From contig CBFFRQ010000054.1 in the NCBI GenBank assembly GCA_965644315.1, forward strand, positions 186,001 to 250,000: a DNA stretch of 64,000 bases. The letters are read 5' to 3'. Positions 37,775-61,140 of this stretch are shown here, piece by piece. The stretch's first letter is position 1; each line of letters begins with the position of its first letter. The translations under genes and the position numbers were made by a program. The notes below the pieces were generated by a model, which was not told where the DNA came from, ran no database searches, and saw nothing but the letters and a program-made list of their open reading frames with translations. This DNA is from Caecitellus pseudoparvulus. Lineage: Eukaryota; Protista; Bigyra: Bicosoecida.

Positions 37775-38701
37775 ATGGCTGATAGCAGTGGAGTGTCGGT
37801 GGTGGCACGGTGGAAGGCTGCATGCGACGTTGAGCAAGCAGATGTGCTACTGAGCATGCTGCACGGGTGTGGTGATGGTGCAGATGCGGAGCTGGGAGGC
37901 TTGTCACGTTCGGACACAACTGCTGCCTTTGTGGTCGCTTGCAAGGCAGGGCATGTTGGGCTGCTGCGTGGGCTGTTGACGTTGGAGGGGGATCTTGCAG
38001 TGGACGTACATGCAGGACTTGATGGCTACCCTGAGAGTGGCTTCAGAGCTGCTTGTCAGAATGGGAACTTGGACGTGGTGCGCGAGCTGCTTGCGTTAAC
38101 AGGAGACCGTGAAGTTGATGTACATGCTGGGCGAGAGGGCGAGCCTGAGGCTGGCTTCCGGCTTGCGTGTCAGCATGGGCACCTGAATGTGGTGCGTGAG
38201 CTTCTGGACCTGGCCGGGCATCGCGAAGTAGATGTGCATGCTGCGTTCATGGGCAATCCAGAGGCTGGGTTCTGGCTTGCATGCTACACTGGGCATGTGG
38301 AGGTGGTACGAGAGTTGCTGGCTCTTTCTGGGTCTCGTGAAGTGGATGTACATGCGGGGTTTAAGGGTGATCCCGAGGCCGGCTTCCGATGGGCCTGTAA
38401 CAATGGGCACGTTGATGTGGTTCGCGAGCTGCTTGCTCTGGGCGGGCATCGTGAGATAGATGTGCACGTAGAAGACTGGCGTGGACCTGAGGCTAGCTTT
38501 CGCCTTGCTTGCAAGGAGGGACACACTGATGTAGCTCGTGAGCTGCTGGGCCTGACTGGCCACCGAGCCATCATTCTGCAAGCACGCCTTGCCGCAGGAG
38601 AGGCAGCTGTGCAGGCGGGCAAGGATGCAGTGTGGGTTGGCACCAGTACGCGGCAGGGTCGCCAGGCATTGGTGCTGCTGCGGGCAGCTCGAGCAGCGTA
38701 G
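37775..38701 (+). CDS. Ankyrin-array gene A1 (308 aa; N-cap + 4 x 38-aa repeats + C-cap)
   Basis: Repeats read xxxxxPExGFxxACxxGHxxVVRELLxLxGxREVDVHA. The gene is intronless and ends RAARAA. Confidence 0.88.
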   Translation: MADSSGVSVVARWKAACDVEQADVLLSMLHGCGDGADAELGGLSRSDTTAAFVVACKAGHVGLLRGLLTLEGDLAVDVHAGLDGYPESGFRAACQNGNLDVVRELLALTGDREVDVHAGREGEPEAGFRLACQHGHLNVVRELLDLAGHREVDVHAAFMGNPEAGFWLACYTGHVEVVRELLALSGSREVDVHAGFKGDPEAGFRWACNNGHVDVVRELLALGGHREIDVHVEDWRGPEASFRLACKEGHTDVARELLGLTGHRAIILQARLAAGEAAVQAGKDAVWVGTSTRQGRQALVLLRAARAA

Positions 38702-39528
38702 GCACATCTCTGTCCAGAGACCGGCCAAACGTCCGTGTCGTCCACCAGGGAAGGCTCCACGCACAGGCTGATAAACGGAGCATATGCGGGCTCCACGCTG
38801 CACCATTCACACAGCCATGGCAACCGTCAGCTTCGGGATGATCAGCGTTCGTGGGCTATGTAAACCACCTGCGGCGTACATGGTTGAGGGCGATGGCTTG
38901 AGCGCCAACCCTTGCGAGTGCGACATCTGCACCGACAGCGTGACAGGGCCGTGGCCAGGCGGCTGGGGGTGCTGGCAGACCACGCAAGTCTCCTGGTCAT
39001 CCACATGCCGCCCATGCTGCAGCGGGCGGGTGATGAGCAGTGCCACCTGGGCGGTGACGGTGTGGCAGCTGGCGTGAGGGATGGTGTTGTGGCTGGCCCT
39101 GGCCGCTGTGGCCATTGTGCGGAGTGGAGATGCAGGGACCGAGGCGGCCGTCAGTGCAGGATAGAGTGCAGGATGATGGTGCTTTCTTCGGACCAGCCAT
39201 CATTGGAGAGCGGGTGGGGAGCCCGCGCCCCGCGATACCCTCAGTTCGGACAGCGGCATGCTGTGTTGGGCAGGATGCAGGCCTCCCAGGCAGGCGGTGA
39301 TGGCACGGTGACTGGTGGTGCAGTAGAGGTACTGGTGGAGGTGCTGGGGCCGGGGCGTCAGGACAAGGCCGGACCAGCACACCTCGGGAGCGCTGTGCTG
39401 GCGTGTGAACGAGAATAAGTTTATAGACTAGGTACGATACTTCTCTGCGAAGAAGTGAGTGTTGGGGTGTGAAGCTGTGTTTGGGGCCAAGTACAAAGAA
39501 TTTAAACAGCATTGGGACACTATTGCGC

Positions 39529-40002
39529 TCACTTGCATGGGCCGTTTGCTTGATATTGAGGCAAGTTTGGGACGTGTTTTGGTGGGCAACTTTGTCCTCG
39601 ACTGTTGCGTTGTCCCACAGGACCATCCAGGCGCTCCCCATGAGTGAAACCAAACCGAAAGTCCATGAATTCACGGGATCTTGTGTCTTGGTAGTTAAGG
39701 CATCTTCTTATCGTCTCTCTCTCGAGAAAACCACTAATCAGCACCGACCGTTGCGGAATGCGGAACTTGATCAGCCGCCCCAGACGTTCCGGCGCCGAGT
39801 ACACGCTCAGGAGCTCAGTTGCGGCAACAAGAGTCAGGTTCTTACGTCTTAAAGTAGAGATGATGCTTTGTAGCCTGATTAATTGTGCTGAATTGTCTTG
39901 CAGACTGAGATAGATGGATGTGGAAGCTGTTGTCCTCTTAGTGACTAACTCCTCTTCCAGTGATTCCAAACTCTTACCCTTCATCCACCTCCAGACACTC
40001 AA
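39529..40002 (-). CDS. Hypothetical small ORF inside transposon 1
   Basis: 157-codon ORF in the AT-richer end of the element, with no recognised motif. Confidence 0.2.
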   Translation of the reverse strand: MSVWRWMKGKSLESLEEELVTKRTTASTSIYLSLQDNSAQLIRLQSIISTLRRKNLTLVAATELLSVYSAPERLGRLIKFRIPQRSVLISGFLERETIRRCLNYQDTRSREFMDFRFGFTHGERLDGPVGQRNSRGQSCPPKHVPNLPQYQANGPCK

Positions 40003-40344
40003 TTTTCACTATCTTTTGATCAAAACTGGATATTAATGGAAAAATATAACAGGGGCTAGAATGTTCAAAGGTATGGTAGGCTTCTTGCTTGCCTCATGTG
40101 CTCAGGAGACTCGGCAAACGGCCCGGCGTGGCGTTTCATCTGGCACTCTTCCCTGGCAGAGTTCCATGTGGACCCACAGAGGGTGCGGCAGAGTACGGGA
40201 TGGCTGTAATCCTATGATAAGCGTAATATAGTGGAATACATTTCGAGGCGTGAAAAAAGCTCCGAAATACCACGTTTTTTGTCGGTTTGGAGGCCGTCTT
40301 TGTTGGACTGGCTCTGGGGTGAAACTCCGGTGAAACTTGGCCGG

Positions 40345-43300
40345 TTAGAAAGCGCATGCGCTCGTGCGCCGCGGCCGTTTAGACAGATTTCGCACGGGTT
40401 TATTTCCCATGGACCTCTTTTTCCCACCAGTACGAGCTTTCGTCTTGACCCCACCGACCTTTGCTTCTGTCATGGCCGCCCCACCCTTTGGACCAACCTT
40501 GGCGCCCGCACGTTCGTGGCCTGTCTCGGCCCCACTCTGCTTCTGAGTCTTGACCTCTTCATCTTGGACAGCTGCCTCCGCCTGCGTCATTTGGGCTACC
40601 TTCCTCACCTTTCCTTCCGTTGCGTGTGCTGCAGAGGCAACCCGTGATACCAAGGTTTTCTCGCTGTAGGGGCAGGCCCCATCCTTGCGTGCCTGCTGCT
40701 CCTCCAGGAACAGCTGGCGAATCTCATGTTCTAGCTCCGGGGTGACAGACGAGGTGGCCCTGTGGTACAGGGGCAAACCAGAGGCCTCGACTTCCTCGAC
40801 GGTTGGTGGGGCGGGTGGAACTGGGTTGCGTTGAAGCGCCGCAGTGATCTCTCCATCACCGAGGCCAGTGACACTAGAGCACAACGCAGACAGCAGATCC
40901 AAGCTGTCTGCTGCTTTGCCCGCCTTGGATCGGGTCTCGCGCTTGCGACTGTGCGAGTTGGTGTACTTAGATAGCAGCTTGGCAGCAGTGGCTTGGTTCC
41001 TCTCCAGCCAGTACAGTGTCAGGTTCATCTTGGCCACATCGAGGCGGGTTGAAGTCCCTGCCGTCACCATGTCTCGCATCCCAGCGTGTAGGCTCTCGTT
41101 TCCCCCTGTTGTCGTCGCGCCGTGAACCGCATCTCGCCCATTCATCAGACCCTGAATGCCGACCAAGTTGTTGCATGAGGCCTTGACCCGGGATCGAGTC
41201 AGTGCGTAGGGGGATCCTTTCTGAAGGATGCCGTGGGTGGGAGCACCGCGTACAACAGATGTGGCACCACTCTCGCTGGGGGGCGCCCAGACTACCTCGA
41301 AGAGCTTGGCAACCCGCTTCAGCTCAGCCTGAGCTTGGCTCACGTTGTCTGGACCCACGTGCAGAGGAAGCATGGGAACGGCACCTTCACCTTCATGTAC
41401 ACCTTCAGCAGTCACAGTGAATGGCTGGCCGCGGGAGCGGCGATGCAGCATGCCGGCAGCAGCGGCACACACAGCTGCCAAGGCGAGGGGGACGTGCTCG
41501 CGAAGCCTTGCAGCAGCCCCGACTGCACGCGCTGGCCCGTACACAGCCCACCCAAACTTGGCAAGGAAGGACTTGACCACCCCCTGCTGTCCCTGGCTCA
41601 GGGGCTTGCGTGCAAGGATAGCATGGGCGCAAGCTTTGAATCCCTGGATCGCTTCCCTTGCAGAGGGCAGGTCATTCAACTGCTTGTCAATGTCTCGCTC
41701 TGGCAGCATCAAGCGCGAAGACACTTCCGTTCTGGGGGGCGTCCGTATCCAGTGTACAGTGTCAAACCACAGCCTTGACAACACCTTGCCATCTTGGTGC
41801 ACGGATTTGCTGGGAATGGTCTTGGTCACGCGGCTGGCAAAGTGCCAAGGGTCCACCGCGAACCGCACCACGCCTTTCTTCAGCAGTGGGAAGTGCACGT
41901 CGATGATTTTCTGCAGGGTGTGCTGGTGGGTCCTGAGGTTGTCCACTGTGATGACGCTGGGGTGGGACGCACCCGGGCCACGCTCCCGCAGGTGTCCCTT
42001 CAGCTTGCACAGTAAAAAGTCCAGGACCCAGGCCAGGTTGGCCCCACTCTCGTGGCCCGTGAGCATGGGACGCTGCAAGATGAAGCCGTATCGCCCCACA
42101 ACCGTGGCTATGCAGGGAGCTACCCGCCACCGGGTTGTGCCTCTGGCCCGAGTTGCTGTGGCAGTGCCACCGCTGCCATCCCCTGTGCACGCTGCCAAAG
42201 CCTGCACATTGCCTGTGTCTTCACCAGCTTCATCATCACCTTCATCCAGATGCTCCCCGTCGCACTCCTGCCCTTCAGGCCCGGGGGGCACGTCAGCTGC
42301 TTGCATGCTGTCATGCTGCCCAGGCCTCGGACCAACCACGTGCACCCGTGCAGAGGATGCAAAGGTCCAGTCCACGCTGATGGTGTCAGCGAAGCGCGCC
42401 AGGGCTTCCTCGTACAGACTGACGTGTGGCTCCACTGTGACATGGAAGATGTGCAGCACAGCATCTCGCAAAGCCTCCACCCCAGTGCTCAGCTGCAGCC
42501 TCTCCTCGATGGGGGTCTTCACGCGGCGCACGATCCCCGCCACGGCCCTGCCAATGGCATCGTCCTTCTGGTACCAGAACTTTTGTCGCAGCTCTCTCTT
42601 CTACTTCCTAAACGTGTCCCGAAAAGGGTGCATCAGGTCTCTGTAGAATGCATCCTGTACCTTGGCCATGCCTTCGCGACGGTGCGCGACGTAGCACTCC
42701 CACAGACTCTCTGCTGCATCTTCATCCAGGAGCAGAGAGCCAGCAAGTGCACAAGGTATGGACAGGGTCAGCCTGCGCCCCTCCATATGGGGAAAGGGGG
42801 TACCGTCCTGCTGCTGCTCGGGGAAAAGACGGTCCTTGAGCTCCCAGAACTTCTGCGTGCCGACCAGGACAGAGGCACCGTGCTTCTGGCAGGTGTACCT
42901 GACCTTTTTGACCGACTGCACGCCACGCATGCCAGTGATCAAACACTGCGTACACTCCTGTATCCCATTTGTTGTCCAGGCACAAGTGTCGGCCGTGTCC
43001 GCGTTGGGACACATGCCCCAGGGCACCACAGGGCGTCCGTCTGAGCCACCGTCTACCGGGACAGACATCATTCGCAAATGAATGGCCATCGAGCTTGGGG
43101 CCATACTTTCCTGCAGTTCTTTTTCCATGTTCCTGAGCATCCCAGTCAACTTCTCAGGCAGCGGGCCAGCCTCTGCAGCTGCAGCCCCCCCTGTCCATGG
43201 CGCCTCAGCTCGCGCTGCCATGGCTGACCGAAAGGATACCCCCCCTTCTGCGGCTTTGGCTTGGTATGCATCGCTGTCGGGGAAGGTGTGCCCGTCAGGT

Positions 43301-44647
43301 GTCCAGGGGATGGGTCCTTCGACCAGCTTGTGGGTCTCCTCATCCGCTTGATCGAACCTGCTCCCCAGAGCTGGGTGTGCGGCAGCGACGCCAACTGCCT
43401 GAATCCGCCGCTCTGGGGGCTGCTTCTTGTGAGGAATGAAATGCTTGTAAACTGTGCCAGCAAACGCAGCATGCTCAGGTTTCTCGACATACCACTTGTC
43501 TTCGGTGATTGCGTGGGTGTATCCCCCGAGGAGACCCTGCTCGCCGACACACTCCTCCTCGCGGTCTGTGGTTCGATACACCAAGCCGCCTTCAATCCTG
43601 CGGACCTTGTCCCGAAGAGCGGCAGTCACAGGTCCCTGTGCGTCCCGCAACGCGGCCGCAATCCCAATCTCTGCCTTGTCTGCCATGTAGGTCAGCACAA
43701 GCCCCTCCCCAGGCTGTGGAGGAAGCGCCATCCTGCCCAAGGCTGCGCGCACCATCATCACGCTCGACCCAACAAGCTGAACAGTGGCAGGCTTGGCAGG
43801 CGATGCCATTAACACGGTCAGGATTGTGCTCATGTTCCCGGCGAGCGCCGCTGGACAGGTGGGCACGAGAACCTCCCTGGGAGGCTGTGGGAGGCAATGC
43901 TCAGCGGGCCCCACTGCAGAGCACTGCTCGGTGAGCTCGCCTGGACTCATGTCACCGTGAAGGAGAAGGTGGGAGGCTGCTGGGGCACACCTGTGAACAA
44001 CAGCTTCAGACTTGGCCAGCGCCTGGTCGGACCACGTGCTACCGTGCCCCAGAGGAACGCTGCGGCGCAGGCTGTGCAACGCTGATTTTGTCAGTGACTC
44101 TGGAGACAGGTCTTCGACCGAGTCTGAAGCAACTGTAACCTCCACGGGGCTCTGGGCATCAGGATGGCCTGCGGACAAAGGCGGATGTGGGGGACTGCAG
44201 GTACAGGCCGAGACCCTGCAGGAAACAAGAGAAAAGCTTCAGTATCACCTTCTTCATGCCGTTGTGGTGCTTCATGGGGCACCAGAGTGTCTGCATCTTG
44301 CTCTGTGGTACGGAAACGCTCGCAGCTGGTGCTGCCGTTATGGGCGAAACGCCGTTAGCACCACAAGACGCAAATACGCACCTTCTGCTGCCATTTTGAC
44401 AGGTCCTGCCCCAGCAGGAGTGAGATTCAAATCCTTTTTTCACCATTGCACGCCAAAAACACACGTCAGAGGAGCAGTGGTAGTGAGTGCCGTCAATGAA
44501 GGTTGAGTTGCTACTGCCCTTGCGGGGAGCATAGCACCCTCGTGCAATGGCCGCGGCCCGGAGCGAGCAAAGCTGACATTCAGAAGCCTTGGACCTTTCT
44601 ACCTTGAAACAGTGCGTTGTAAGCACCCCTGGGGCTCTTCGCGGCAT
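40345..44647 (-). pseudogene. Large DDE transposase of the IS256/DxxH group (MuDR/Kolobok/Dada-like), interrupted by one TAG
   Basis: ORFs 42601-44178 and 40345-42543 are in the same frame and separated only by TAG at 42603-42601. Motifs: ISVDWTF (D), VITVDN (D), AVDPWHFASRV (DxxH), GGNESLH (E), and an upstream Cys/His cluster CPN..C..CTQC..CQKH. Cys-rich ORF 44159-44647 is a possible first exon; its splice junction is not resolved. Confidence 0.75.
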
Positions 44648-45218
44648 CCTGGCGTGGGTAGCGCAATGTCGTTCCTCGGTCAGTGGGGGCGCCCGTTGGA
44701 GCTGGTGCCGGAGGAGGTGGGGGGTACATTCAAAACGATGTGACGGTCAAGGAGAGAGGGGCAAAGGCGCCAAGTGAAGGAGATCAAATCCAAGTTGATG
44801 AGTGTCCAAATGCCACCTTTGTCACCCGACAATTTACCTAGACTATAAACTTATTCTCGTAGGTCTCGTGAAACCCTGCAATAAGGGCAAATGTAGGACA
44901 AACTGATATAAGGTCTAGCACTATGCTCAACATTCTTAGAGCAATTTTGCGTTCTTGGAGGTTTTGCGCAACAAGACCCGGCGGGGGGGCTTCGCCAAAA
45001 TTCAAATACTTCAAATTTGAGTTTTTTGTTTGATGGTGCCGTTGGCCGTTGGCGTTACGGGCACCGAAAGAAAACGGCCAATCACCCAAGGCCGTCTACC
45101 TCTTTCAGAATAAGCGCTGGCTCAAAAATTTCACGCAATTCATGGCCAACCTCAAGCTTTCTCATAACTTCCGCCATTTGTTCGCCCGGTTTCCTCTTCC
45201 AAGCCGAATTCTCACCCA

Positions 45219-47429: not shown

Positions 47430-47598
47430 GCTCGAGGACACCACCCCTCTCAATGGTGTCTTCCCCCTGGCCCACCCGGCAGCGTGCATTGATCAGCAAA
47501 GCCGTGTCTCGCTCCTGTTCCCTCCTCTGATCACCATACACAACAAATACAATGACTTTACACTCGGGACGGAAGGAGTGAAAGGTGTGTCCCCTGGA

Positions 47599-48936
47599 TC
47601 ATGCAAGACGAGCCTCTATCCGTGTCACTGCTTGCTCGATCGACGTCATCCTGTCCAAGAGCTGGACAAGAGCCTCCTTCAGAGTGTCGTGCATGCGTTG
47701 AGAGTCCCTTGACACATCGAAGCACTCTTTTGCTTGTTGGGCAGCCTTTCGAAGCACTGCAGCGCTGTGAAACAGACCGCTTGGGTCACTGCCGCGGTTT
47801 CCAGCATTGCGTCTTGATGCTGAAGCCTCAGTTGCTTGTGCTACTGCTGCGATTGCAGCGTCTTGCTCCTCAAGAGACAGAGCGGTCTCGACAGACAAGA
47901 AGGGGACTGCCGCGGGGTCGATCTGACATGCCGCCTCAGTAAGTTCATCAACCAGCGTATCAGCAATGTTGCTAGGGGTACCCGCCTGTCCCGGGCTTGG
48001 GGTCTGAGCTCCTCGAACCGATTTGGACCGTGGTCGATCGAGGGCCGGGGACGTACGCTGACGCTTCCGTCGGCTTCGCTCAAGCTTTGGGTTCACGCGA
48101 ACAGCCATGCGCACCACTGAATGGTAACGAATGTACCCGAAAGCTGCTGCGAAGCGTGCAACTTCTTCACTTCCCGGAGTCAGGGTGGGGCCAAGGCACG
48201 GACCTGAGTGAGCCTCCTGGTTGTGAACATGTACCCGCAGCAAGGCTGAAAATGGGAGCAATGCTGGATCAGAAGGGCATTTAGTTGGATCCTCTGGGAA
48301 TGCCACGGCTGGATTTTCCACTGCATGCTCTGCAAGAAGCTCAAGGGCCTGGATGGCTTCCTTGAGTCCCCGTCGCAGTCTGCCCTTCAATTGCAGGTTG
48401 TGGAAAGTCCTCTGTACAGACTTCCCGTTCTTGCGGTCTGCCAAGAAAGCTGACAACTTTGCTTGGGCATGTGCAGCAGACCAGTACAGCCCTGCAGGGC
48501 CCACGTTTCCCTCTGTTGGAACGCCAAGGTATGCAGCTGCATGCTCAGGCCGCACCAGCCATGAAACGCCACCGGGGACGTCCACGGTTCCGGCTCCCGC
48601 GCTGATCAATCGCTCCAAGAACTTGATAAACTGGGTCTTTTCTGCAGCTTTATGCGGAAGAGCATCGACAAGGGACCCACCTTCGTCCATTTTCTTCTCC
48701 AGCCAGCTTGAGGCAATCTAGGCGTTTCATTTGAAACGGGTTTGTGGGGTACCACACCTACAGCAGCAAGATCCAGCGCCAAAACTCACTGCGAAAAGGG
48801 TCAGTACAACGTCATCTGGGACTGGGACTCCTCTGGGTTTTACGATTCCGCGTTGTACGGCATCCTGTTGGCCATTCGGGGTTGTTGAGTGGGGTTGGGA
48901 ACCATGCTGGCTCCCGCCAGCCGGATGGGCGGCCAT
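47599..48936 (-). CDS. Harbinger accessory protein (ORF2); putative DNA-binding protein with a basic NLS and a C-terminal coiled coil
   Basis: Exon 48936-48790 joins ORF 47599-48690 in frame through a 72-nt intron (48789-48718, GTGAGT..CTAG). It contains RSRRKRQR and ends LVQLLDRMTSIEQAVTRIEARL. The gene lies between the TIRs, convergent with the transposase. Confidence 0.7.
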
Positions 48937-49486
48937 CTGGAAAGAATCCAAGCCAAAACTAAAGTCCGTAGTACTGGGATAAGTTGTGCAGCTTTTAGTA
49001 TGCTCTGAGTTGGATTTGAGTGAAGTATCATTTTATTCCTGCAAACCGATTTCCGCAATTCTCACTTGCCAATCACTACGACCTACAGCAAAACCTGCAT
49101 CAGGCTGGCGAGTGCAAGCGATTGATTCCGCATGAAGTACATATCGATCAGTTTTTGGTGGGGTTCCCAACTCAAATATCCCAAGAATCCTCATTTCGCC
49201 ATTTCTGATATAAGCCTGAACTCCTACAGTAGTCAATCAGCAATTTCTTACTGTAAGGTTTCACGAGACCTATCTCGACGCACCGCTGTGCTGGAGTCCG
49301 CTTGCACCCAGTCTAATGGGCCAGGCAGCAATGCAAGTCAGGCAGCTGCGATATTGTCGGGGCTGCGTCAAAATCAACGCCACTTCCTGCATGGGACACT
49401 GGAAAGCGGCTGTTTCAGAAACACTGTGCTGTGCAGGCGAGTTGGGTGGCAACGGTGACATGCGCGGAAACTGTATTCACCACGCC

Positions 49487-50803: not shown

Positions 50804-53800
50804 ATGGCTGACGAGGGCGGCAGTGAGTCAGTGGAGGGGCGATGGAAGGCTGCATGTGATGGTGATCAGGCAGATGAGCTGATGAGCATCCTGGACGGGT
50901 GTGGAGATGGTGTGGGTGTGGAGTTGGGAGGTTTGTCGAGTGCTGACACCTCGGCTGGCTTTGTGGTTGCTTGCAAGACGGGGCACGTTGGGTTGTTGCG
51001 TGGGCTGCTGGCGCTGACCGGCCACCGCGAGGTGGATGTGCATGCTGGGCCTGAGGGTAATCCTGAGCATGGCTTCCGGCTTGCTTGTAAGCATGGGCAC
51101 ATCGACGTGGTGCGGGAGCTGCTGTCTTTGACCGGGCATCGCGAGGTGGACGTGCATGCTGGGCCTGAGGGCAATCCTGAGCATGGCTTCCGGCTTGCCT
51201 GTGAGTTCGGGCACATTGACGTGGTGCGGGAGCTGCTGGCTCTGAACGGGCACCGCGAGGTGGATGTGCATGCTGGGCCTGAGGGTGATCCTGAGGCTGG
51301 CTTCCGATTTGCTTGTCAGAATGGGCACATTGACGTGGTGCGTGAGCTGCTGTCTTTGACCGGGCATCGCGAGGTGGATGTGCATGCTGGGCCTGAGGGT
51401 AATCCTGAGCATGGCTTCCGGCTTGCCTGTGAGTTCGGGCACATTGACGTGGTGCGGGAGCTGCTGGCTCTGAACGGGCACCGCGAGGTGGATGTGCATG
51501 CTGGGCCTGAGGACAATCCTGAGCGAGGCTTCCTGCTTGCTTGTCAGAGTGGGCATATTGACGTGGTGCGAGAGCTGCTGGCGCTGACCGGGCATCGTGA
51601 GGTGGACGTGCATGCTGGGGTTGAGGGCTGGCCAGAGGCTGGCTTCCTGCTTGCTTGTAAGCATGGGCACATCGATGTGCTGCGTGAGCTGCTGGCTCTG
51701 ACCGGGCACCGCGAGGTGGATGTGCATGCTGGGCCTGAGGGCAATCCTGAGCATGGCTTCCGGCTTGCCTGTGAGTTCGGGCACATTGACGTGGTGCGGG
51801 AGCTGCTGGCTCTGAACGGGCACCGCGAGGTGGATGTGCATGCTGGGCCTGAGGGTGATCCTGAGGCTGGCTTCCGATTTGCTTGTCAGAATGGGCACAT
51901 TGACGTGGTGCGTGAGCTGCTGTCTTTGACCGGGCATCGCGAGGTGGATGTGCATGCTGGGCCTGAGGGTAATCCTGAGCATGGCTTCCGGCTTGCCTGT
52001 GAGTTCGGGCACATTGACGTGGTGCGGGAGCTGCTGGCTCTGAACGGGCACCGCGAGGTGGATGTGCATGCTGGGCCTGAGGGTGATCCTGAGGCTGGCT
52101 TCCGATTTGCTTGTCAGAATGGGCACATTGACGTGGTGCGTGAGCTGCTGTCTTTGACCGGGCATCGCGAGGTGGATGTGCATGCTGGGCCTGAGGGTAA
52201 TCCTGAGCATGGCTTCCGGCTTGCCTGTGAGTTCGGGCACATTGACGTGGTGCGGGAGCTGCTGGCGCTGACCGGGCTTCGTGAGGTGGATGTGCATGCT
52301 GGGCCTGAGGACAATCCTGAGCGAGGCTTCCTGCTTGCTTGTCAGAATGGGCACATTGACGTGGTGCGTGAGCTGCTGTCTTTGACCGGGCATCGCGAGG
52401 TGGACGTGCATGCTGGGCCTGAGGGTAATCCTGAGCATGGCTTCCGGCTTGCCTGTGAGTTCGGGCACATTGACGTGGTGCGGGAGCTGCTGGCGCTGAC
52501 CGGGCATCGTGAGGTGGACGTGCATGCTGGGGTTGAGGGCTGGCCAGAGGCTGGCTTCCTGCTTGCTTGTAAGCATGGGCACATCGATGTGCTGCGTGAG
52601 CTGCTGGCTCTGAACGGGCACCGCGAGGTGGATGTGCATGCTGGGCCTGAGGGCAATCCTGAGCATGGCTTCCGGCTTGCCTGTGAGTTCGGGCACATTG
52701 ACGTGGTGCGGGAGCTGCTGGCTCTGAACGGGCACCGCGAGGTGGATGTGCATGCTGGGCCTGAGGGTGATCCTGAGGCTGGCTTCCGATTTGCTTGTCA
52801 GAATGGGCACATTGACGTGGTGCGTGAGCTGCTGTCTTTGACCGGGCATCGCGAGGTGGATGTGCATGCTGGGCCTGAGGGTAATCCTGAGCATGGCTTC
52901 CGGCTTGCCTGTGAGTTCGGGCACATTGACGTGGTGCGGGAGCTGCTGGCGCTGACCGGGCTTCGTGAGGTGGATGTGCATGCTGGGCCTGAGGACAATC
53001 CTGAGCGAGGCTTCCTGCTTGCTTGTCAGGGAGGGCACATTGACGTGGTGCGGGAGCTGCTGGCGCTGACCGGGCATCGTGAGGTGGACGTGCATGCTGG
53101 GGCTGAGGGCTGGCCAGAGGCTGGCTTCCGGCTTGCTTGTAAGCATGGGCACATCGATGTGCTGCGTGAGCTGCTGGCTCTGAACGGGCACCGCGAGGTG
53201 GATGTGCATGCTGGGCCTGAGGGTGATCCTGAGGCTGGCTTCCGATTTGCTTGTCAGAATGGGCACATTGACGTGGTGCGTGAGCTGCTGTCTTTGACCG
53301 GGCATCGCGAGGTGGATGTGCATGCTGGGCCTGAGGGTAATCCTGAGCATGGCTTCCGGCTTGCCTGTGAGTTCGGGCACATTGACGTGGTGCGGGAGCT
53401 GCTGGCGCTGACCGGGCATCGCGAGGTGGACGTGCATGCTGCTCTCAGGGGTTACCCTGAGCAAAGCTTTCTGCTTGCTTGTAAGCATGGGCATATTGAC
53501 GTGGTACGCGAGCTGCTGGCTCTGACCGGGCACCGCGAGGTGGATGTGCATGCTGGGGTTGAGGGCTGGCCAGAGGCTGGCTTCCTGCTTGCTTGTAAGC
53601 ATGGGCACATCGACGTGCTGCGTGAGCTGCTGGCTCTGAACGGGCACCGCGAGGTGGATGTGCATGCTGGGCCTGAGGGTGATCCTGAGCATGGCTTCCG
53701 GCTTGCCTGTGAGTTCGGGCACATTGACGTGGTGCGGGAGCTGCTGGCGCTGACCGGGCTTCGTGAGGTGGATGTGCATGCTGGGCCTGAGGACAATCCT

Positions 53801-56362
53801 GAGCGAGGCTTCCTGCTTGCTTGTCAGGGAGGGCACATTGACGTGGTGCGGGAGCTGCTGGCGCTGACCGGGCATCGTGAGGTGGACGTGCATGCTGGGG
53901 CTGAGGGCTGGCCAGAGGCTGGCTTCCGGCTTGCTTGTAAGCGTGGGCACATTGACGTGGTGCGAGAGCTGCTGGCGCTGACCGGGCATCGTGAGGTGGA
54001 CGTGCATGCTGGGGTTGAGGGCCGGCCTGAGGCTGGCTTCCGACTTGCCTGTCAGGGAGGGCACATTGACGTGGTGCGGGAGCTGCTGGCGCTGACCGGG
54101 CTTCGTGAGGTGGATGTGCATGCTGGGCCTGAGGACAATCCTGAGCGAGGCTTCCTGCTTGCTTGTCAGGGAGGGCACATTGACGTGGTGCGGGAGCTGC
54201 TGGCGCTGACCGGGCATCGTGAGGTGGACGTGCATGCTGGGGCTGAGGGCTGGCCAGAGGCTGGCTTCCGGCTTGCTTGTAAGCATGGGCACATTGACGT
54301 GGTGCGAGAGCTGCTGGCGCTGACCGGGCATCGTGAGGTGGATGTGCATGCTGGGCCTGAGGGCCGGCCCGAGTGGGGCTTCCGAGCTGCCTGTCACAAT
54401 GGGCACATTGATGTGGTGCGAGAGCTGCTGGCGCTGACCGGGCATCGTGAGGTGGACGTGCATGCTGGGGTTGAGGGCCGGCCTGAGGCTGGCTTCCGAC
54501 TTGCCTGTGAGAATGGGCACATTGATGTGGTGCGAGAGCTGCTGGCGCTGAGAGGGCATCGCGAGGTGGATGTGCATGCTGGGCCTGAGGGGGATCCTGA
54601 GCATGGCTTCCGGCTTGCCTGTGAGTTCGGGCACATTGACGTGGTGCGTGAGCTGCTGTCTTTGACCGGGCATCGTGAGGTGGATGTGCATGCTGGGCCT
54701 GAGGGTTACCCTGAGCAAGGCTTCCTGCTTGCTTGTATGCATGGGCACATTGACGTGGTGCGGGAGCTGCTGGCGCTGACCGGGCATCGTGAGGTGGACG
54801 TGCATGCTTCGGACAATTTGGGGCCTGAGCATGGCTTCCGGCTTGCCTGTGAGTTCGGGCACATTGACGTGGTGCGGGAGCTGCTGGCGCTGACCGGGCA
54901 TCGCGAGGTGGATGTGCATGCAGGGGTCGGGGACAATCCTGAGTGTGCTTTCCAAAAGGCCTGCCATGAAGGCCATCTTGATGTGGTGCGAGAGCTGTTG
55001 GCGCTGACTGGTGCTCGAGAGGTGGATGTGCATGCTGGGCCTGAGGGCAATCCTGAGCAAGGCTTCCTGCTTGCTTGTATGCATGGGCACATCGACGTGC
55101 TGCAGGAGCTGCTGGCGCTGACCGGGCATCGTGAGGTGGACGTGCATGCTTCGGACAATTTGGGGCCTGAGCATGGCTTCCGGCTTGCCTGTGAGTTCGG
55201 GCACATTGACGTGGTGCGTGAGCTGCTGTCTTTGACCGGGCATCGTGAGGTGGATGTGCATGCTGGGCCTGAGGGTTACCCTGAGCAAGGCTTCCTGCTT
55301 GCTTGTAAGCATGGGCACATCGACGTGCTGCAGGAGCTGCTGGCGCTGACCGGGCATCGTGAGGTGGACGTGCATGCTTCGGACAATTTGGGGCCTGAGC
55401 ATGGCTTCCGGCTTGCCTGTGAGTTCGGGCACATTGACGTGGTGCGGGAGCTGCTGGCGCTGACCGGGCATCGCGAGGTGGATGTGCATGCAGGGGTCGG
55501 GGACAATCCTGAGTGTGCTTTCCAAAAGGCCTGCCATGAAGGCCATCTTGATGTGGTGCGAGAGCTGTTGGCGCTGACTGGTGCTCGAGAGGTGGATGTG
55601 CATGCTGGGCCTGAGGGCAATCCTGAGCAAGGCTTCCTGCTTGCTTGTATGCATGGGCACATTGACGTGGTGCGGGAGCTGCTGGCGCTGACTGGTGCTC
55701 GAGAGGTGGACGTGCATGCTGCTTTCAGGGGTGACCCTGAGCAAGGCTTCCTGCTTGCTTGTAAGCATGGGCACATTGACGTGGTGCGGGAGCTGCTGGC
55801 GCTGACGGGGCATCGTGAGGTGGACGTGCATGCTGGGGTTGGGGGCAGGCCTGAGCAAGGCTTCCTGCTTGCTTGTCAGGGAGGGCACATCGACGTGGTG
55901 CGGGAGCTGCTGGCGCTGACGGGTGATCGAGCCGTGGATGTGCATGCAGGGGTCGGAGGCAATCCTGAGTATGGCTTCCGAGCTGCCTGCGAGAATGGCC
56001 ACGTGGATGTGGTCCGCGAACTTCTGGCCCTAAGCGGACATCGCGAGGTGGACGTGCATGCTTGTATCCAGGGTGAGCCTGAGGCTGGCTTTCGACTTGC
56101 TTGCAAGAACAGGCATTTGAATGTTGTTCGCGACCTGCTGGGCCTCACAGGCCATCGAGCCATCCCACTGCAATCACGCCTTGAGGCTGGAGAGCTAGCT
56201 ATGCAGGCAGCCAGAGATGCCGTCTGGCTCGGTACCAGCACTCGGCAAGGCCGGAAAGCCGTGCTGCTGCTACGGAGCGCAAAGAGGGCAAGGAAGCGTC
56301 CACGTCCACAGACCGGCTCAGCGTTGGTGTCTCCATCAGGGAAGGCTCCACGCTCGGACTGA
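50804..56362 (+). CDS. Ankyrin-array gene A3 (1852 aa; 81-aa N-cap + 44 x 38-aa repeats + 99-aa C-cap with a basic NLS-like motif)
   Basis: 1852-81-99 = 1672 = 44 x 38. The tandem DNA unit is 114 bp and the tail contains KRARKRPRP. Confidence 0.92.
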   Translation: MADEGGSESVEGRWKAACDGDQADELMSILDGCGDGVGVELGGLSSADTSAGFVVACKTGHVGLLRGLLALTGHREVDVHAGPEGNPEHGFRLACKHGHIDVVRELLSLTGHREVDVHAGPEGNPEHGFRLACEFGHIDVVRELLALNGHREVDVHAGPEGDPEAGFRFACQNGHIDVVRELLSLTGHREVDVHAGPEGNPEHGFRLACEFGHIDVVRELLALNGHREVDVHAGPEDNPERGFLLACQSGHIDVVRELLALTGHREVDVHAGVEGWPEAGFLLACKHGHIDVLRELLALTGHREVDVHAGPEGNPEHGFRLACEFGHIDVVRELLALNGHREVDVHAGPEGDPEAGFRFACQNGHIDVVRELLSLTGHREVDVHAGPEGNPEHGFRLACEFGHIDVVRELLALNGHREVDVHAGPEGDPEAGFRFACQNGHIDVVRELLSLTGHREVDVHAGPEGNPEHGFRLACEFGHIDVVRELLALTGLREVDVHAGPEDNPERGFLLACQNGHIDVVRELLSLTGHREVDVHAGPEGNPEHGFRLACEFGHIDVVRELLALTGHREVDVHAGVEGWPEAGFLLACKHGHIDVLRELLALNGHREVDVHAGPEGNPEHGFRLACEFGHIDVVRELLALNGHREVDVHAGPEGDPEAGFRFACQNGHIDVVRELLSLTGHREVDVHAGPEGNPEHGFRLACEFGHIDVVRELLALTGLREVDVHAGPEDNPERGFLLACQGGHIDVVRELLALTGHREVDVHAGAEGWPEAGFRLACKHGHIDVLRELLALNGHREVDVHAGPEGDPEAGFRFACQNGHIDVVRELLSLTGHREVDVHAGPEGNPEHGFRLACEFGHIDVVRELLALTGHREVDVHAALRGYPEQSFLLACKHGHIDVVRELLALTGHREVDVHAGVEGWPEAGFLLACKHGHIDVLRELLALNGHREVDVHAGPEGDPEHGFRLACEFGHIDVVRELLALTGLREVDVHAGPEDNPERGFLLACQGGHIDVVRELLALTGHREVDVHAGAEGWPEAGFRLACKRGHIDVVRELLALTGHREVDVHAGVEGRPEAGFRLACQGGHIDVVRELLALTGLREVDVHAGPEDNPERGFLLACQGGHIDVVRELLALTGHREVDVHAGAEGWPEAGFRLACKHGHIDVVRELLALTGHREVDVHAGPEGRPEWGFRAACHNGHIDVVRELLALTGHREVDVHAGVEGRPEAGFRLACENGHIDVVRELLALRGHREVDVHAGPEGDPEHGFRLACEFGHIDVVRELLSLTGHREVDVHAGPEGYPEQGFLLACMHGHIDVVRELLALTGHREVDVHASDNLGPEHGFRLACEFGHIDVVRELLALTGHREVDVHAGVGDNPECAFQKACHEGHLDVVRELLALTGAREVDVHAGPEGNPEQGFLLACMHGHIDVLQELLALTGHREVDVHASDNLGPEHGFRLACEFGHIDVVRELLSLTGHREVDVHAGPEGYPEQGFLLACKHGHIDVLQELLALTGHREVDVHASDNLGPEHGFRLACEFGHIDVVRELLALTGHREVDVHAGVGDNPECAFQKACHEGHLDVVRELLALTGAREVDVHAGPEGNPEQGFLLACMHGHIDVVRELLALTGAREVDVHAAFRGDPEQGFLLACKHGHIDVVRELLALTGHREVDVHAGVGGRPEQGFLLACQGGHIDVVRELLALTGDRAVDVHAGVGGNPEYGFRAACENGHVDVVRELLALSGHREVDVHACIQGEPEAGFRLACKNRHLNVVRDLLGLTGHRAIPLQSRLEAGELAMQAARDAVWLGTSTRQGRKAVLLLRSAKRARKRPRPQTGSALVSPSGKAPRSD

Positions 56363-56872
56363 AGGGCGGTGCATGTGTGGGCTCCACGCTGCACGGCGCA
56401 AGTCGCCACGGCCACTGTCACCTTCGGAATGACCAGCGTGCGTGAGCTATTCAAACCACTTGTGGCGTGCGTGGCTTGGAGCTTGAGCCTGAGTACCAAC
56501 CCTTGGAGGAGGGTGCTGCCTCCAAAGCTTGGCAGTTCCGAGGCCAGGCGGCTTGGGTTGTTGACGGGCAAAGTGGAACTCGTGAGCATCAACAATGGAG
56601 CAATGCAGCGAACAGACGATGGGTGTGTCTTCCGTTGGAGGCCGGCGCCCTTGCCCGTGCCTTGGGGCGGTAGAGTGAATGGGGAGCATGAAAAGCATGG
56701 CAGCAGCACCTTCAATGCACAGCGCCTTGCCAGGTGACTGTGGATACCGTCATCTAGTACACACCGTGTACGCTCGGTCACATTGCATGTCGTTTCATCA
56801 GCAGGCGGGGGCGTGGCCCCACCCGCCCGCAGTGGCCTGCAGCAAGGGCAGCAGCTCCTGGCCGTTCAAGGG
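56080..56872. repeat. ~0.8-kb near-identical segmental duplicate of ~60858-61650 (offset 4778 bp), including the last ~25 codons of the glycosyltransferase gene
   Basis: Direct comparison. The minus-strand peptide PLNGQELLPLLQATAGGWGHAPAC* occurs in ORFs ending at both 56798 and 61576. Confidence 0.92.
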
Positions 56873-56930
56873 CCCCGCCACTCCCTCAGCTCGGATAGCG
56901 GCATGCTGGGTTGGGCAGGATGCAGGCCCC

Positions 56931-57271: not shown

Positions 57272-57606
57272 CCCAGGCAGGCGGTGATGGCACGGTGACT
57301 GGTGGTGCAGTGGAGGTACTGGTGGAAGTGCTGGGGCAGGGGCGTCAGGACGAGGCCGGACCAGCACACCTCGGGAGCGCTGCGCTGGAGCTCGCTTGCG
57401 TGAAAAGGTGTGGAGTCCAGGCAGCAATGCAGCCGAAGCAGGTGGGACATTGTCAGGGCTGCGCCACATCAACGCCCGCTTCATGAGCTCGAGTCAGATG
57501 GTAAAATATGGGTGCTCTTGCAGGACTGTGCTGTGCCATCTGTGCCGCTGTGCAGGCGAATTGGGTGGCGAAGGCTGATCAAGTGCGTAAGTGGAGTCAA
57601 CACGCC

Positions 57607-58533
57607 ATGGCTGATGGCAGTGACAGCCAGACGGTGGTGGATCGATGGCGCGCTGCATGTGGTTGAGAGCAGGCAGATGTGCTGATGAGCATGCTGCAGG
57701 GGTGTGGTGGTGGTGCGCCGGACTTGGATGGATTGTCAAGCACTGAGACAACGGCTGGCTTTGTGGTTGCGTGCAAGAATGGGCAAGTTGGGCTGCTGCG
57801 TGGGCTGCTGGCGTTGGAGGGGGATCTTGCAGTGGACGTACATGCAGAAGACTGGGGTGGGCCGGAGGCTGGCTTCCGATCTGCCTGTGGAAATGGGCAT
57901 GTCGAAATCGTGCGCGAGCTGCTTGCTCTGACCGGGCATCGTGAAGTCGATGTGCATGTTGGAGTTGAGGGCATTCCTGAGGCTGGCTTCCGGCTTGCGT
58001 GTCGCAACGGGAACCTGAATGTGGTGCGTGAGCTGCTGGAACTGGCTGGCTTTCGCGAAGTAGATGTGCATGCTGCGTTCATGGGCTCTCCTGAGGCTGG
58101 GTTCTGGCTCGCATGCTACAATGGGCATGTAGATGTGGTTCGTGAACTGCTGGCTCTTTCTGGGTCTCGTGATGTGGATGTACATGCGGGTTTTAAGGGT
58201 GACCCCGAGGCTGGCTTCCGACTTGCCTGTAACAATGGGCACATTGGAGTGGTGCGGGAGCTGCTTGCGCTGACTGGGCATCGCGAGGTAGATGTACACG
58301 CGTGCGTATTGGGTGTTCCCGAGGCAGGCTTCCGATGGGCATGTCAGGGAGGGTATGTGAATGTGGCTCGAGAGTTGCTGGGCCTCACTGGCCATCGGGC
58401 CACTCCCCATGAAGCACGCCTTGAGGCTGGAGAGGTGGCTGTGCAGCCAGCCAAGGATGCCGTCTGGCTCGGCACCAGCACTCGGCAGGGTCGCAGTGCC
58501 ATGCTGCTGCTGCGAGCTGCCCGAGCTGCATAG
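57607..58533 (+). pseudogene. Ankyrin-array gene A4 (4 internal repeats) with a premature TGA at codon 20
   Basis: ATG at 57607 and TGA at 57664-57666, where A2 has GGA. An in-frame ATG at 57685 could allow re-initiation. The frame ends RAARAA like A1. Confidence 0.75.
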
Positions 58534-59229
58534 ACCATTCCCAGGCCACTGAATGGCTCAGTGTGGGTGTCTGCACCAGGCACGGCTTCACGCTCTGGAT
58601 GAGAAGCGGGGCATGTGTGGGCTCCACGCTGCACCACTCACACAGCCGTGGCCCTCGGAATGATCAGCGTTCGTGAGCCACAGAATTCACCGTGCATGTG
58701 CATGACTGGGTGCGATGGCTTGAGTGTCAACCCTGGGAAGTGCGACGCCTGCGCCCACAGTGTGGCGGAGCCGTGGCCAGGTGGTGGGCATGCTGGCGGA
58801 CCAGGTGGATCTCCTGGTCATCCACGTATCGCCCATGCTGCAGCGAGCGGGTGATGTGCAGGTCTGCTTGGGTGGTTCCGGCGGAGTGGCGGCTGACGTG
58901 GGGGAGGGTGTCGTGGCTGGCCCTGGCCGCTGTGGCCATTGTGCAGAGTGGACGTGCTGAGGCGGGGGCGTCAGGACGAGGCCGGACAAGCTCGCCTCGG
59001 GACCGCTGCGCTGGGGTGCGTTTGCATCGAGGGTCATGAGCCAGGCAGAAAGGCAGCCAAGACAGGTGGGACATTGGCAAGGCTGCGTCAAACTCAGCAC
59101 CTCAATTTCCAGCTTGTATCGGACACTTGAAAGCAGCTACTTCTGTGGTTCTGCACTATGCAGCCTGAGCTGCTGTTCAGGCAATTCAGGTGCTAGTGCG
59201 GAAAGTGCGGAAAGTGCATCCACCACGCC

Positions 59230-61140
59230 ATGGCTGAAGGTAGCAGTGGGGAGTCGTTGGTGGGTCAATGGAAGGCAGCATGTGATGGTGAGCAGGTAGA
59301 CGTGCTGCTGAGCATGCTTGAGAGGTGCGGTGGTCGTGCGGGGCCGGAGCTGGGAGGCTTGTCAGGCGATGAGACAACGGCCGGCTTCTTGGTTGCGTGC
59401 AAGAAAGGGCACGTTGGGCTGCTGCGTGGGTTGTTGGCGTTGGAGGGGGACCTTGCTGTGGACGTGCATGCACAAGATGAAGATGGGCCGGAGGCTGGCT
59501 TCCTGGTTGCCTGCTTGCATGGGCAAAGTGACGTGGTGCGGGAGCTGCTGGCGCTGACCGGGCATCGTGAGGTGGATGCTCATGCGGGGCCTGAAGGGGA
59601 TCCTGAGTGGGGCTTTCAGGCTGCATGCCAGGAAGGGCATATTGACGTGGTGCGAGAGCTGCTGGCGCTAAATGGGCAACGAGAGGTGGACGTGCATGCT
59701 GGGCCTGAGGGCCGGCCAGAGGCTGGCTTCCGGCTTGCTTGTCAGGAAGGGCATATTGACGTGGTGCGTGAGCTGCTGGCGTTGAGGGGGCATCGCGAGG
59801 TGGATGTGCATGCTGGGCCTGAGGGGGATCCTGAGCATGGCTTCCGGCTTGCCTGTGAGTTCGGGCACATTGACGTGGTGCGGGAGCTGCTGGCTCTGAG
59901 CGGGCATCGTGAGGTGAATGTGCATGCTGGGGATGAGTATGGGCCTGAGGCTGGCTTCCTGCTTGCTTGTCAGGATGGGCACATTGGCGTTGTGCGAGAG
60001 CTGCTGGCTCTGACGGGTGATCGAGCTGTAGACGTGCATGCTGGGCCTGAAGGGGATCCTGAGTGGGGTTTACTGGTTGCGTGTGAGAATGGGCACATTG
60101 ACGTTGTGCGCGAGCTGCTGGCGCTGACAGGTCACCGAGCTGTGGATGTGCATGCAGGGGTCGGAGGCAATCCTGAGCACGGCTTCCTGCTTGCCTGCCA
60201 GAACGGGCACATTGATGTGGTGTGTGAGCTGCTGGCGCTGACGGGTGATCGAGCCGTGGATGTGCATGCAGCCTTCAATGGCGACCCTGAGTGGGGCTTC
60301 CTGCTTGCCTGCGAGAACGGCCACATTGATGTGGTGCGTGAGCTGCTGGCGCTGACGGGTGATCGCGAGGTGGACGTGCATGCTGGGCCTGAGGGCGAGC
60401 CTGAGGCTGGCTTTCGATTTGCTTGTCAGAGTGGGCACATTGACGTGGTGCGGGAGCTGCTGGCGCTGACCGGGCATCGTGAAGTGAATGTTCATGCAGG
60501 AGATTGGCTTGGGCCTGAGGCTGGCTTTCGACAAGCTTGTCAGCATGGGCACATTGACGTTGTGCGCGAGCCGCTGGCGCTGACTGGTGCTCGAGAGGTC
60601 GATGTGCATGCTGCATTCCTTGGCAGGCCCGAGGCTAGCTTCCAAGTTGCATGCCAGGAAGGGCATATTGATGTGGTGCGAGAGCTGCTGGCTTTGAGCG
60701 GGCACCGTGAGGTGGATGTGCATGCTATGGCTGAGGGTGATCCTGAGGCTGGCTTCCGACTTGCTTGTCAGAATGGGCACATTGACGTGGTGCGGGAGCT
60801 GCTGGCGCTGACTGGACATCGTGAGGTGGATGTGCATGCCGAGGCTGATGGTGAGCTTGAGGCTGGCTTTCGACTTGCTTGCAAAAACAGGCATTTGAAT
60901 GTTGTTCGCGACCTGCTGGGCCTCACAGGCCATCGAGCCATCCCACTGCAATCACGCCTTGAGGCTGGAGACCTAGCTATGCAGGCAGCTAGAGATGCCG
61001 TCTGGCTCGGTACCAGCACTCGGCAAGGCCGGAAAGCCATGCTGCTGCTACGGAGCGCAAGAAGGGCAAGGAAGCGTCCACGGCCACAGACCGGCTCAGC
61101 GTTGGTGTCTCCATCAGGGAAGGCTCCACGCTCTGACTGA
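59230..61140 (+). CDS. Ankyrin-array gene A5 (636 aa; 12 internal repeats; NLS-like tail)
   Basis: 636-81-99 = 456 = 12 x 38. The C-cap is almost identical to that of A3. Confidence 0.92.
   Translation: MAEGSSGESLVGQWKAACDGEQVDVLLSMLERCGGRAGPELGGLSGDETTAGFLVACKKGHVGLLRGLLALEGDLAVDVHAQDEDGPEAGFLVACLHGQSDVVRELLALTGHREVDAHAGPEGDPEWGFQAACQEGHIDVVRELLALNGQREVDVHAGPEGRPEAGFRLACQEGHIDVVRELLALRGHREVDVHAGPEGDPEHGFRLACEFGHIDVVRELLALSGHREVNVHAGDEYGPEAGFLLACQDGHIGVVRELLALTGDRAVDVHAGPEGDPEWGLLVACENGHIDVVRELLALTGHRAVDVHAGVGGNPEHGFLLACQNGHIDVVCELLALTGDRAVDVHAAFNGDPEWGFLLACENGHIDVVRELLALTGDREVDVHAGPEGEPEAGFRFACQSGHIDVVRELLALTGHREVNVHAGDWLGPEAGFRQACQHGHIDVVREPLALTGAREVDVHAAFLGRPEASFQVACQEGHIDVVRELLALSGHREVDVHAMAEGDPEAGFRLACQNGHIDVVRELLALTGHREVDVHAEADGELEAGFRLACKNRHLNVVRDLLGLTGHRAIPLQSRLEAGDLAMQAARDAVWLGTSTRQGRKAMLLLRSARRARKRPRPQTGSALVSPSGKAPRSD

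Follow-up and report, generated by a model that had tools for sequence, protein, structure and literature searches.

Natural ankyrin (ANK) repeat proteins are usually cited with up to ∼33 to 34 repeats. In the repeat arrays of fungal NOD-like receptors (NLRs), internal conservation has been judged by a criterion of at least 85% amino acid identity across a minimum of 100 residues (Dyrka et al. 2014, PMC4986451), and Bathycoccus and Micromonas carry expanded ANK families that are duplicated in tandem and have no assigned function (PMC3491373; PMC11409870). Here, we describe an ANK gene cluster of the bicosoecid Caecitellus pseudoparvulus that lies in a 64,000-nucleotide (nt) stretch of contig CBFFRQ010000054.1 (the window). 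Between 37.7 and 61.1 kb, the window holds five plus-strand ANK genes, g1 to g5, each in frame from a conserved-context ATG to a stop codon (Table 1). Their products are capped ANK solenoids, and that of g3 is an unusually long natural repeat array. On balance, we consider it probable that the cluster encodes soluble, intracellular ANK proteins that act as binders or adaptors and form a lineage-specific family evolving by birth and death, with g3 as a recent multivalent expansion. A literature search returned no account of comparable capped, stand-alone ANK arrays from protists.

Translation and unit parsing divided the products of g1 to g5 into 6, 7, 46, 6, and 14 units when caps are included and into 4, 5, 44, 4, and 12 internal units. 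The spacing is exactly 38 amino acids (114 nt), with zero indels over 79 units. All five genes begin the array with a degenerate N-terminal unit (W-K-A-A-C...) and end it with a divergent last unit; both caps are kept between genes and in database relatives and are set apart from the internal units, which amounts to a capped consensus architecture. This exact parse agrees with the initial annotation of the locus, which had described five tandem genes sharing an N-cap, a C-cap, and a 38-residue module in the same repeat numbers. With 46 units, the g3 protein would be at or beyond the usual natural ANK range. A 1,724-codon open reading frame (ORF) also runs antisense across the g3 array (50828-56002, minus strand), a mirror effect of the stop-free repeat. 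We assign the coding strand of g3 to the plus strand because identities by codon position on that frame are 0.857, 0.876, and 0.766 and because the ANK profile matches there.

Pfam searches found solely ankyrin families in g1 to g5, and Ank_2 scored 60 to 522 bits across all five proteins against a cutoff of 27.3. The best matches in a PDB sequence search were a designed ANK protein (4qfv), Kidins220, and FEM1B. Single-sequence structure prediction was mediocre (predicted local distance difference test [pLDDT] score, 62.7), and an AlphaFold model of g1 built from an 18-sequence alignment was used in its place (pLDDT, 86.5; predicted template modeling score, 0.82); it has two helices per unit. 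When Foldseek was run with this model, ANK proteins alone were among the top matches (probability, 1.00), including FEM1B/C and designed ankyrin repeat proteins (DARPins), the latter with target-normalized template modeling scores of up to 0.85 and a root mean square deviation of 2.7 Å. Pfam, the PDB search, and the model with its Foldseek matches thus agree with the ankyrin fold and DARPin-like layout first proposed. The canonical 33-residue period with its TPLH motif is absent. The period is 38 residues, x-G-F-x stands in the place of TPLH, and the loop is five residues longer than the canonical ANK loop; this is a variant repeat that still belongs to the ankyrin superfamily. With columns numbered from the G of the GF motif, helix 1 of the model comprises column 38 and columns 1 to 7, helix 2 comprises columns 11 to 18, and the remainder is loop.

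Eighteen columns of the 38-residue unit are invariant or nearly so. Entropy exceeds 2 bits at columns 7, 8, 32, 33, 35, and 38 and is 1.2 to 1.8 bits at columns 3, 4, 31, and 34. The initial annotation had located the variable sites before PE, after PE, and at the two positions before GH; these are the high-entropy columns 35, 38, 7, and 8, and to them are added columns 3, 4, and 31 to 34. Columns 38, 3, 4, 7, and 8, the variable ones of helix 1, follow an i, i+3, i+4, i+7, i+8 spacing, which places them on one helix face. The stripe on the other side, facing the core, consists of the conserved residues F2, A5, C6, and G9, which align to the core-facing L8, A11, A12, and G15 of consensus ANK. 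Structure prediction and mapping of the variable sites, as had been suggested, put them on one face of helix 1 and in the preceding loop. From the model, we infer that the variable residues line the exposed inner-helix face and the preceding loop, the predicted canonical ANK binding groove, with solvent exposure deduced from helix periodicity and established ANK structure. The correspondence with the sites randomized in DARPin libraries (positions 2, 3, 5, 13, 14, and 33 of the 33-residue repeat, hidden Markov model alignment) is partial: columns 7, 8, 35, 34, and 31 are variable and fall on library positions, whereas column 37 falls on one and is invariant, and columns 38, 3, 4, 32, and 33 vary outside the library positions. 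The same columns vary in 63 units of 25 unrelated database relatives (Spearman coefficient, 0.86), and the variation is therefore a property of the family and not a hypervariability specific to this locus.

A HMMER search of 1.84 billion representative sequences yielded 152 proteins at an E value of ≤1e-30. The closest relatives that share the caps (P0184, P0185, P0187, P0193, P0189, P0213, and P0008) are 162 to 497 amino acids long and 53 to 65% identical; they have the same N-cap, two to about six 38-residue units, and a strictly conserved C-terminal tail. The tail spans ∼45 residues and contains the strict motifs D-A-V-W-x-G-T-S-T and G-R-x5-L-R. It is followed by a basic, K/R-rich stretch in g2, g3, and g5 and likewise in P0184. 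Other relatives have a different layout: P0001 to P0003, among others, carry the 38-residue units behind an unannotated N-terminal domain of ∼600 residues, P0186 carries them behind a kinase and PP2C, and a larger set has 34-residue units followed by a C-terminal region of ∼200 residues that ends in a looser G-R-R...L-x-R motif. Neither the tail nor the N-terminal domain of the relatives had a match in Pfam (E ≤ 1), PDB, NCBIfam, or PADLOC. None of the close relatives has an NTPase, and STAND-ANK proteins appeared only as generic matches at 26 to 42% identity. PADLOC defense profiles, a prokaryotic library and so a weak test here, gave no match for g1 or g5 and one weak match to the ANK-repeat part of P0003. 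The genes had been described as stand-alone, with no NTPase or effector domain. It is correct that they carry no NTPase or other Pfam domain; the description leaves out the conserved tail shared with the short relatives, as well as the ∼600-residue domain or the kinase and PP2C of other close relatives.

No database relative has a run of more than about ten 38-residue units, by which measure g5 and especially g3 appear exceptional in length. Metagenomic proteins of more than 3,000 amino acids with many ANK stretches do exist in the HMMER results. Exact look-up in the protein collection found g1, g3, and g5 absent, and a scan of metagenome contigs with unspecific patterns returned only three weak loci at 26 to 35% identity. 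The short form (∼300 residues), which is conserved in other taxa, looks like an ordinary adaptor, and the long arrays look like multivalent derivatives of it.

Mean identity between units is 81% at the amino acid level and 83% at the nucleotide level in g3, 74% and 76% in g5, and 67 to 70% in g1, g2, and g4. Within g3, identity is 77% at third codon positions, compared with 86 to 88% at first and second positions. Pairwise synonymous diversity between units is 0.43, nonsynonymous diversity of the scaffold is near zero, and the ratio of nonsynonymous to synonymous substitution rates (dN/dS, or ω) of the scaffold is 0.13 to 0.18. Since scaffold ω is low while synonymous diversity is high, we conclude that purifying selection on the protein, and not homogenization of the DNA, holds the scaffold. 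The scaffold had been called almost invariant in its DNA as well, a claim contradicted by this synonymous diversity and by unit nucleotide identities of 67 to 83%.

Exact copying of DNA is seen in one gene. Among the 69 internal units, 14 match another unit exactly at the DNA level; all 14 belong to g3, where 32 protein unit types make up the 46 units (caps included) and 30 distinct internal DNA unit types occur; the string of unit types contains repeated identical blocks, two to several units long. Between g3 and g5, the C-cap is 97% and the 535-nt 3' flank 96% identical, whereas the arrays and 5' parts reach only 76 to 79%. The near-identical 3' stretch, which comprises C-cap, tail, and flank, lies at 56087-56896 and 60865-61675. 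This identity indicates a putative local gene conversion or a recent partial duplication. The description of the repeats as homogenized is apt for the g3 block duplications and for the 3' end shared by g3 and g5; in the rest of the cluster, synonymous differences between units are large.

To assess selection at the variable columns, the 55 distinct internal units were joined in a minimum spanning tree and substitutions were counted along its edges, with a simulation control. This approach was preferred to phylogeny-based site models because recombination between units would inflate false positives in the latter. The eight most variable columns gave an ω of 1.07 over all edges and of 1.3 to 1.75 on short edges. 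The a priori set of DARPin-mapped columns gave 0.8 to 1.2, which is not significant, and the loop of g3 gave 0.7 to 1.0. The cleanest comparison for selection is that of g1 and g4, which are collinear paralogues: at a dS of ∼0.5, dN/dS is 0.35 to 0.47 at the variable columns and 0.2 at the scaffold. Surface residues have therefore been conserved between old paralogues. In the recently amplified g3 units, the substitution counts suggest that surface residues are near neutral or possibly under weak positive selection.

In light of these data, we favor the reading given at the outset, that of an adaptor-like family under birth-and-death evolution. The ankyrin identity and fold, the exact register, the conserved scaffold, the restriction of variation to one face, the variability of the same columns in relatives, and the existence of short conserved relatives all lead to it, as do the g1/g4 ω values, the co-duplication of flanks, the g3 blocks, the internal stops, and the insertions bounded by terminal inverted repeats; the lack of any NTPase or defense-family match points the same way. 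Gene duplication together with flanks produced the pairs g1/g4 and g3/g5. Self-BLAST aligned the g1 region (37475-39146) to the g4 region (57296-58970) at 76%, flanks included. In-register unequal crossing-over that duplicated blocks of 2 to ∼7 units probably drove the recent growth of g3 to 44 internal units. That two copies gained a stop and that two transposon-like insertions entered one spacer fits a birth-and-death pattern. In the proteins, helix 1 with its solvent-facing stripe would form, together with the loop before it, a ligand groove that differs from unit to unit, the conserved tail could couple the binders to a common partner or place, and the basic stretch in g2, g3, and g5 resembles a nuclear localization signal.

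Several observations weigh against this reading. On the helix-1 face of g3, ω is 1.6 when all edges are counted and 2.2 for short edges (uncorrected P, 1e-3 to 1e-4), and values of this size in recent g3 units hint at more than plain relaxed constraint. The third-position G+C content (GC3) of the cluster is far below that of neighboring housekeeping genes, which is not obviously expected of an ordinary conserved adaptor. Because the database relatives come mostly from short-read assemblies, which underrepresent long arrays, the outlier status of g3 may be partly a sampling effect. Finally, the role given to the tail is a putative one.

The first of these observations speaks for the reading that the initial annotation had put forward, namely, that the genes encode stand-alone ANK binders for diversifying non-self recognition. 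Repeat shuffling and positive selection would vary the residues of the groove, and the products would bind or inhibit proteins of viruses, virophages, or transposons. Fungal NLR ANK arrays are a precedent for such a system (PMC4986451), and several features of the cluster would suit it. Variation is concentrated on the predicted binding face, unit number ranges from 4 to 44 among paralogues, blocks have been shuffled in g3, and stop-bearing copies, transposon-like insertions, and low GC3 occur together, as in fast-evolving regions. The selection signal of the recent g3 units is marginal after correction. After the post hoc choice of columns was simulated (the best five of 10 to 15 unconstrained columns), the P value of the helix face became ∼0.01 to 0.03 on short edges and 0.08 to 0.2 over all edges, and neither the a priori DARPin-mapped set nor the g1/g4 pair shows a significant excess of nonsynonymous change. 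The dN/dS check proposed for the variable sites thus has a mixed outcome: the ratio is 0.35 to 0.47 between g1 and g4, ∼1.1 overall, and 1.6 to 2.2 on the g3 helix face, the last being marginal once corrected.

Other lines of evidence also argue against non-self recognition. Unit identity is under the 85% criterion, the same columns vary in all relatives, the genes contain no signaling or effector domain, and close relatives have no NTPase. The suggested virus link drew no support from IMG/VR scans with g5 and P0033, in which two loci from giant-virus bins gave a generic ANK protein or kin with 34-residue units. The scan with g5 found one giant-virus-bin ANK protein (L001), which is generic and 34% identical. 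That with P0033 found the end of a contig of GVMAG-S-1103017-74 (L005, positions 1-13640; GC content, 65 to 71%), which carries three to four same-strand ANK genes of the 34-residue-unit kin, P0033 included; viral hallmark genes are absent from the 13.6 kb that was fetched, and the contig may be cellular DNA misbinned as viral. We therefore regard non-self recognition as unlikely, albeit the least unlikely of the alternatives. A little less probable again is a natural counterpart of a DARPin library, in which the NTPase-free capped arrays would serve as a germline library of binders, block shuffling and selection on the helix face would generate new antiparasite specificities, and the tail would pass targets to a common partner.

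A neutral explanation of the length variation would be that the cluster is decaying and that replication slippage or unequal crossing-over expanded g3 and g5 with no consequence for selection. Stops in two of the five genes, the 14 exact-duplicate units in g3, low GC3, and an overall ω near 1 at surface sites could all be accommodated by it. The scaffold argues against it: an ω of 0.13 to 0.18 at a synonymous diversity of 0.43 means that purifying selection acted on the units for most of the time over which they diverged. The 5.5-kb frame of g3 is, moreover, still open, and caps and tail are conserved with distant relatives. Such runaway growth is in our judgment quite improbable, more so than either form of antiparasite function.

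The compositional contrast raises the question of horizontal acquisition of the ANK cluster, with a giant virus or a different eukaryote among the conceivable donors. GC3 is 0.55 to 0.64 in the ANK genes and 0.52 to 0.67 in the ORFs of the two insertions, compared with 0.80 to 0.86 in the condensin, COPI-alpha, and kinase genes that flank them, and overall GC content is also reduced across the 38- to 62-kb stretch relative to its flanks. Some family members are, in addition, filed as "viral metagenome" or in giant-virus bins. A low-GC3 island fits weak expression or fast evolution and is not by itself proof of foreign origin. The IMG/VR relative of g5 is the generic protein mentioned above, the contig end with P0033 is GC rich and possibly cellular, and the closest relatives, with the same caps, are in ENA and NCBI assemblies. 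We consider foreign origin very unlikely. Least probable of all is that the length of g3 is an assembly artifact, that is, a collapsed or overexpanded repeat, as might be suspected of a 5-kb array of 114-nt units that include exact duplicates: its register is perfect, its frame is open from ATG to stop, and its 30 distinct internal DNA unit types are enough for anchoring long reads.

The layout of the cluster and its surroundings is given in Table 1. Alignment of the five upstream regions shows a common start context around the ATG codons at 37775, 49487, 50804, 57607, and 59230. The genes g1, g3, and g5 are intact, and g2 and g4, with one internal stop each and no frameshift in either, are probably pseudogenes or N-terminally truncated. 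Spacers of 1,245 nt and 697 nt follow g3 and g4. From the end of g2 to the start codon of g3 there are only 205 nt, so that the 3' flank of g2 is effectively the promoter region of g3. Two abutting insertions bounded by terminal inverted repeats, together ∼9.9 kb (39409-49272) and outside the ANK array, lie in the 10.8-kb gap that separates g1 from g2; with both removed, g1 and g2 are ∼0.9 kb apart, comparable to other gene pairs. The two ORFs of insertion A had no match in Pfam (E ≤ 1), PDB, NCBIfam, or PADLOC, and the element may represent an undescribed transposon family. Insertion B combines a DDE_Tnp_4 transposase-like ORF with terminal inverted repeats, two features of PIF/Harbinger elements. 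Such elements also have a second ORF with a Myb/SANT-like DNA-binding domain; insertion B does contain a second ORF, on the opposite strand, but Pfam assigned it no domain.

Table 1 Features of the ANK cluster and its surroundings (positions in the window)
Feature	Position	Strand	Description
g1 5' flank	37475..37774	+	Conserved; homologous to g4 5' flank; probable promoter/5' untranslated region (self-BLAST and alignment of five upstream regions)
g1	37775..38701	+	Intact, 308 amino acids; N-cap, 4 internal 38-residue units, C-cap, short tail; Pfam Ank_2 E = 2.5e-22
g1 114-nt array	38108-38466		Tandem Repeats Finder
g2	49487..50599	+	5 internal units; one internal stop; long basic tail
g2 114-nt array	49871-50298		Tandem Repeats Finder
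g3	50804..56362	+	Intact, 1852 amino acids; 44 internal units; basic tail; Pfam Ank_2 E = 2.4e-160
g3 114-nt array	50997-56062		Tandem Repeats Finder; 44.4 copies
g3 3' flank	56363..56896	+	96% identity to g5 3' flank (61141-61675)
g4	57607..58533	+	4 internal units; one internal stop; collinear paralogue of g1, same 927-nt length
g4 114-nt array	57865-58335		Tandem Repeats Finder
g5	59230..61140	+	Intact, 636 amino acids; 12 internal units; basic tail
g5 114-nt array	59487-60881		Tandem Repeats Finder
g5 3' flank	61141..61675	+	Homologous to g3 3' flank
Insertion A	39409..44860		5.45 kb; 26-nt terminal inverted repeats, 96%; two minus-strand ORFs
Insertion A ORF	40345-42543	-	731 amino acids
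Insertion A ORF	42601-44178	-	524 amino acids
Insertion B	44860..49272		4.4 kb; 26-nt inverted repeats, 88%; PIF/Harbinger-like
Insertion B ORF 1	45219-47429	+	Uninterrupted; DDE_Tnp_4 (28.7 bits; cutoff, 24.8) and SAP; transposase-like
Insertion B ORF 2	47599-48690	-	No Pfam match even at E ≤ 1, Myb included
COPI-alpha ORF	22419-25712		Flanking housekeeping gene
Protein kinase	27476-28471		Flanking gene
Long ORF	29283-31853	+	856 amino acids; GC3 lowish, 0.65; without Pfam family
Condensin subunit-1 ORF	32913-37127		1404 amino acids; flanking housekeeping gene
Long ORF	61576-63993	-	805 amino acids; GC3 host-like, 0.77; without Pfam family

The window is nuclear DNA of an intron-poor eukaryote, with a GC content of 55 to 71% and long uninterrupted genes for which no spliced model was needed. 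The condensin and COPI-alpha genes match ENA contigs exactly or at 99%. Their best named matches are from chlorophytes at ∼42% identity; those from Tribonema, Ochromonas, and Aureococcus are lower. The lack of a close named match for these housekeeping genes sets the organism apart from the Bathycoccus and Micromonas species with expanded ANK families. Rfam identified no RNA family anywhere in the window. ARAGORN made one tRNA-Pro(AGG) call (22927-23014), which lies inside the COPI-alpha ORF and is probably a false positive.

If the long arrays prove to be expressed and polymorphic, they would constitute the first repeat-shuffling ANK recognition family outside fungal NLRs, in a marine protist lineage, and intracellular immunity in protists could then be tested with metagenomic data. 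The locus has value under the ordinary reading, too: its consensus-like, capped ANK scaffold occurs in nature, lacks TPLH, and repeats a 38-residue unit up to 46 times, which is of interest for repeat-protein folding and design, and it is a clean record of very long solenoids built by in-register unequal crossing-over.

Among described systems, the ANK, TPR, and WD arrays of fungal NLRs resemble this cluster in their tandem similar units, in variation that falls on the inner helix and the hairpin or loop of the concave face, and in changes of unit number by recombination between repeats. They differ in that g1 to g5 lack a NACHT or NB-ARC NTPase and an N-terminal effector domain. The units are also 38 residues long rather than 33, their amino acid identity of 67 to 81% is below 85%, with identical units only in local g3 blocks, and positive selection is not robust.

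DARPins and consensus ANK proteins (PDB 4qfv, 1n0r, 4o60, and 7ujj_G) share with g1 to g5 an N-cap, consensus-like internal units, and a C-cap, and the two residues before GH and a residue at the loop tip vary, as they do in libraries. Unlike DARPins, g1 to g5 are natural and have a 38-residue unit with a longer loop; TPLH is absent, and the equivalents of its T and H (columns 38 and 3) are variable, whereas the equivalent of position 5 (column 37) is invariant. The conserved C-terminal tail and the extension to as many as 46 units are further departures from the designed proteins.

FEM1B and FEM1C, substrate receptors of cullin-2 ligases, were the top structural matches. In these proteins, the ANK groove reads short peptide motifs and a C-terminal module couples the partner. 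At ∼20% identity and with no detectable TPR, VHL-box, or BC-box in g1 to g5, however, the resemblance is at the level of the fold only. In Wolbachia and other intracellular bacteria, the number of ANK repeats likewise varies by tandem duplication; those genes encode secreted bacterial effectors, whereas g1 to g5 form a nuclear eukaryotic locus beside condensin and COPI genes.

The low-GC island, seen here over 64 kb alone, is reminiscent of low-GC outlier regions that occur in small green algae. Compared by description only, the HOM000035 family of the GC-diverse green picoalgae Bathycoccus and Micromonas (Moreau et al. 2012, PMC3491373) is similar in its lineage-specific tandem ANK expansion on particular chromosomes. 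Its layout of an unknown N terminus followed by a C-terminal ANK region is that of the relatives P0001 to P0003, the N-terminal part being the portion that g1 to g5 do without.

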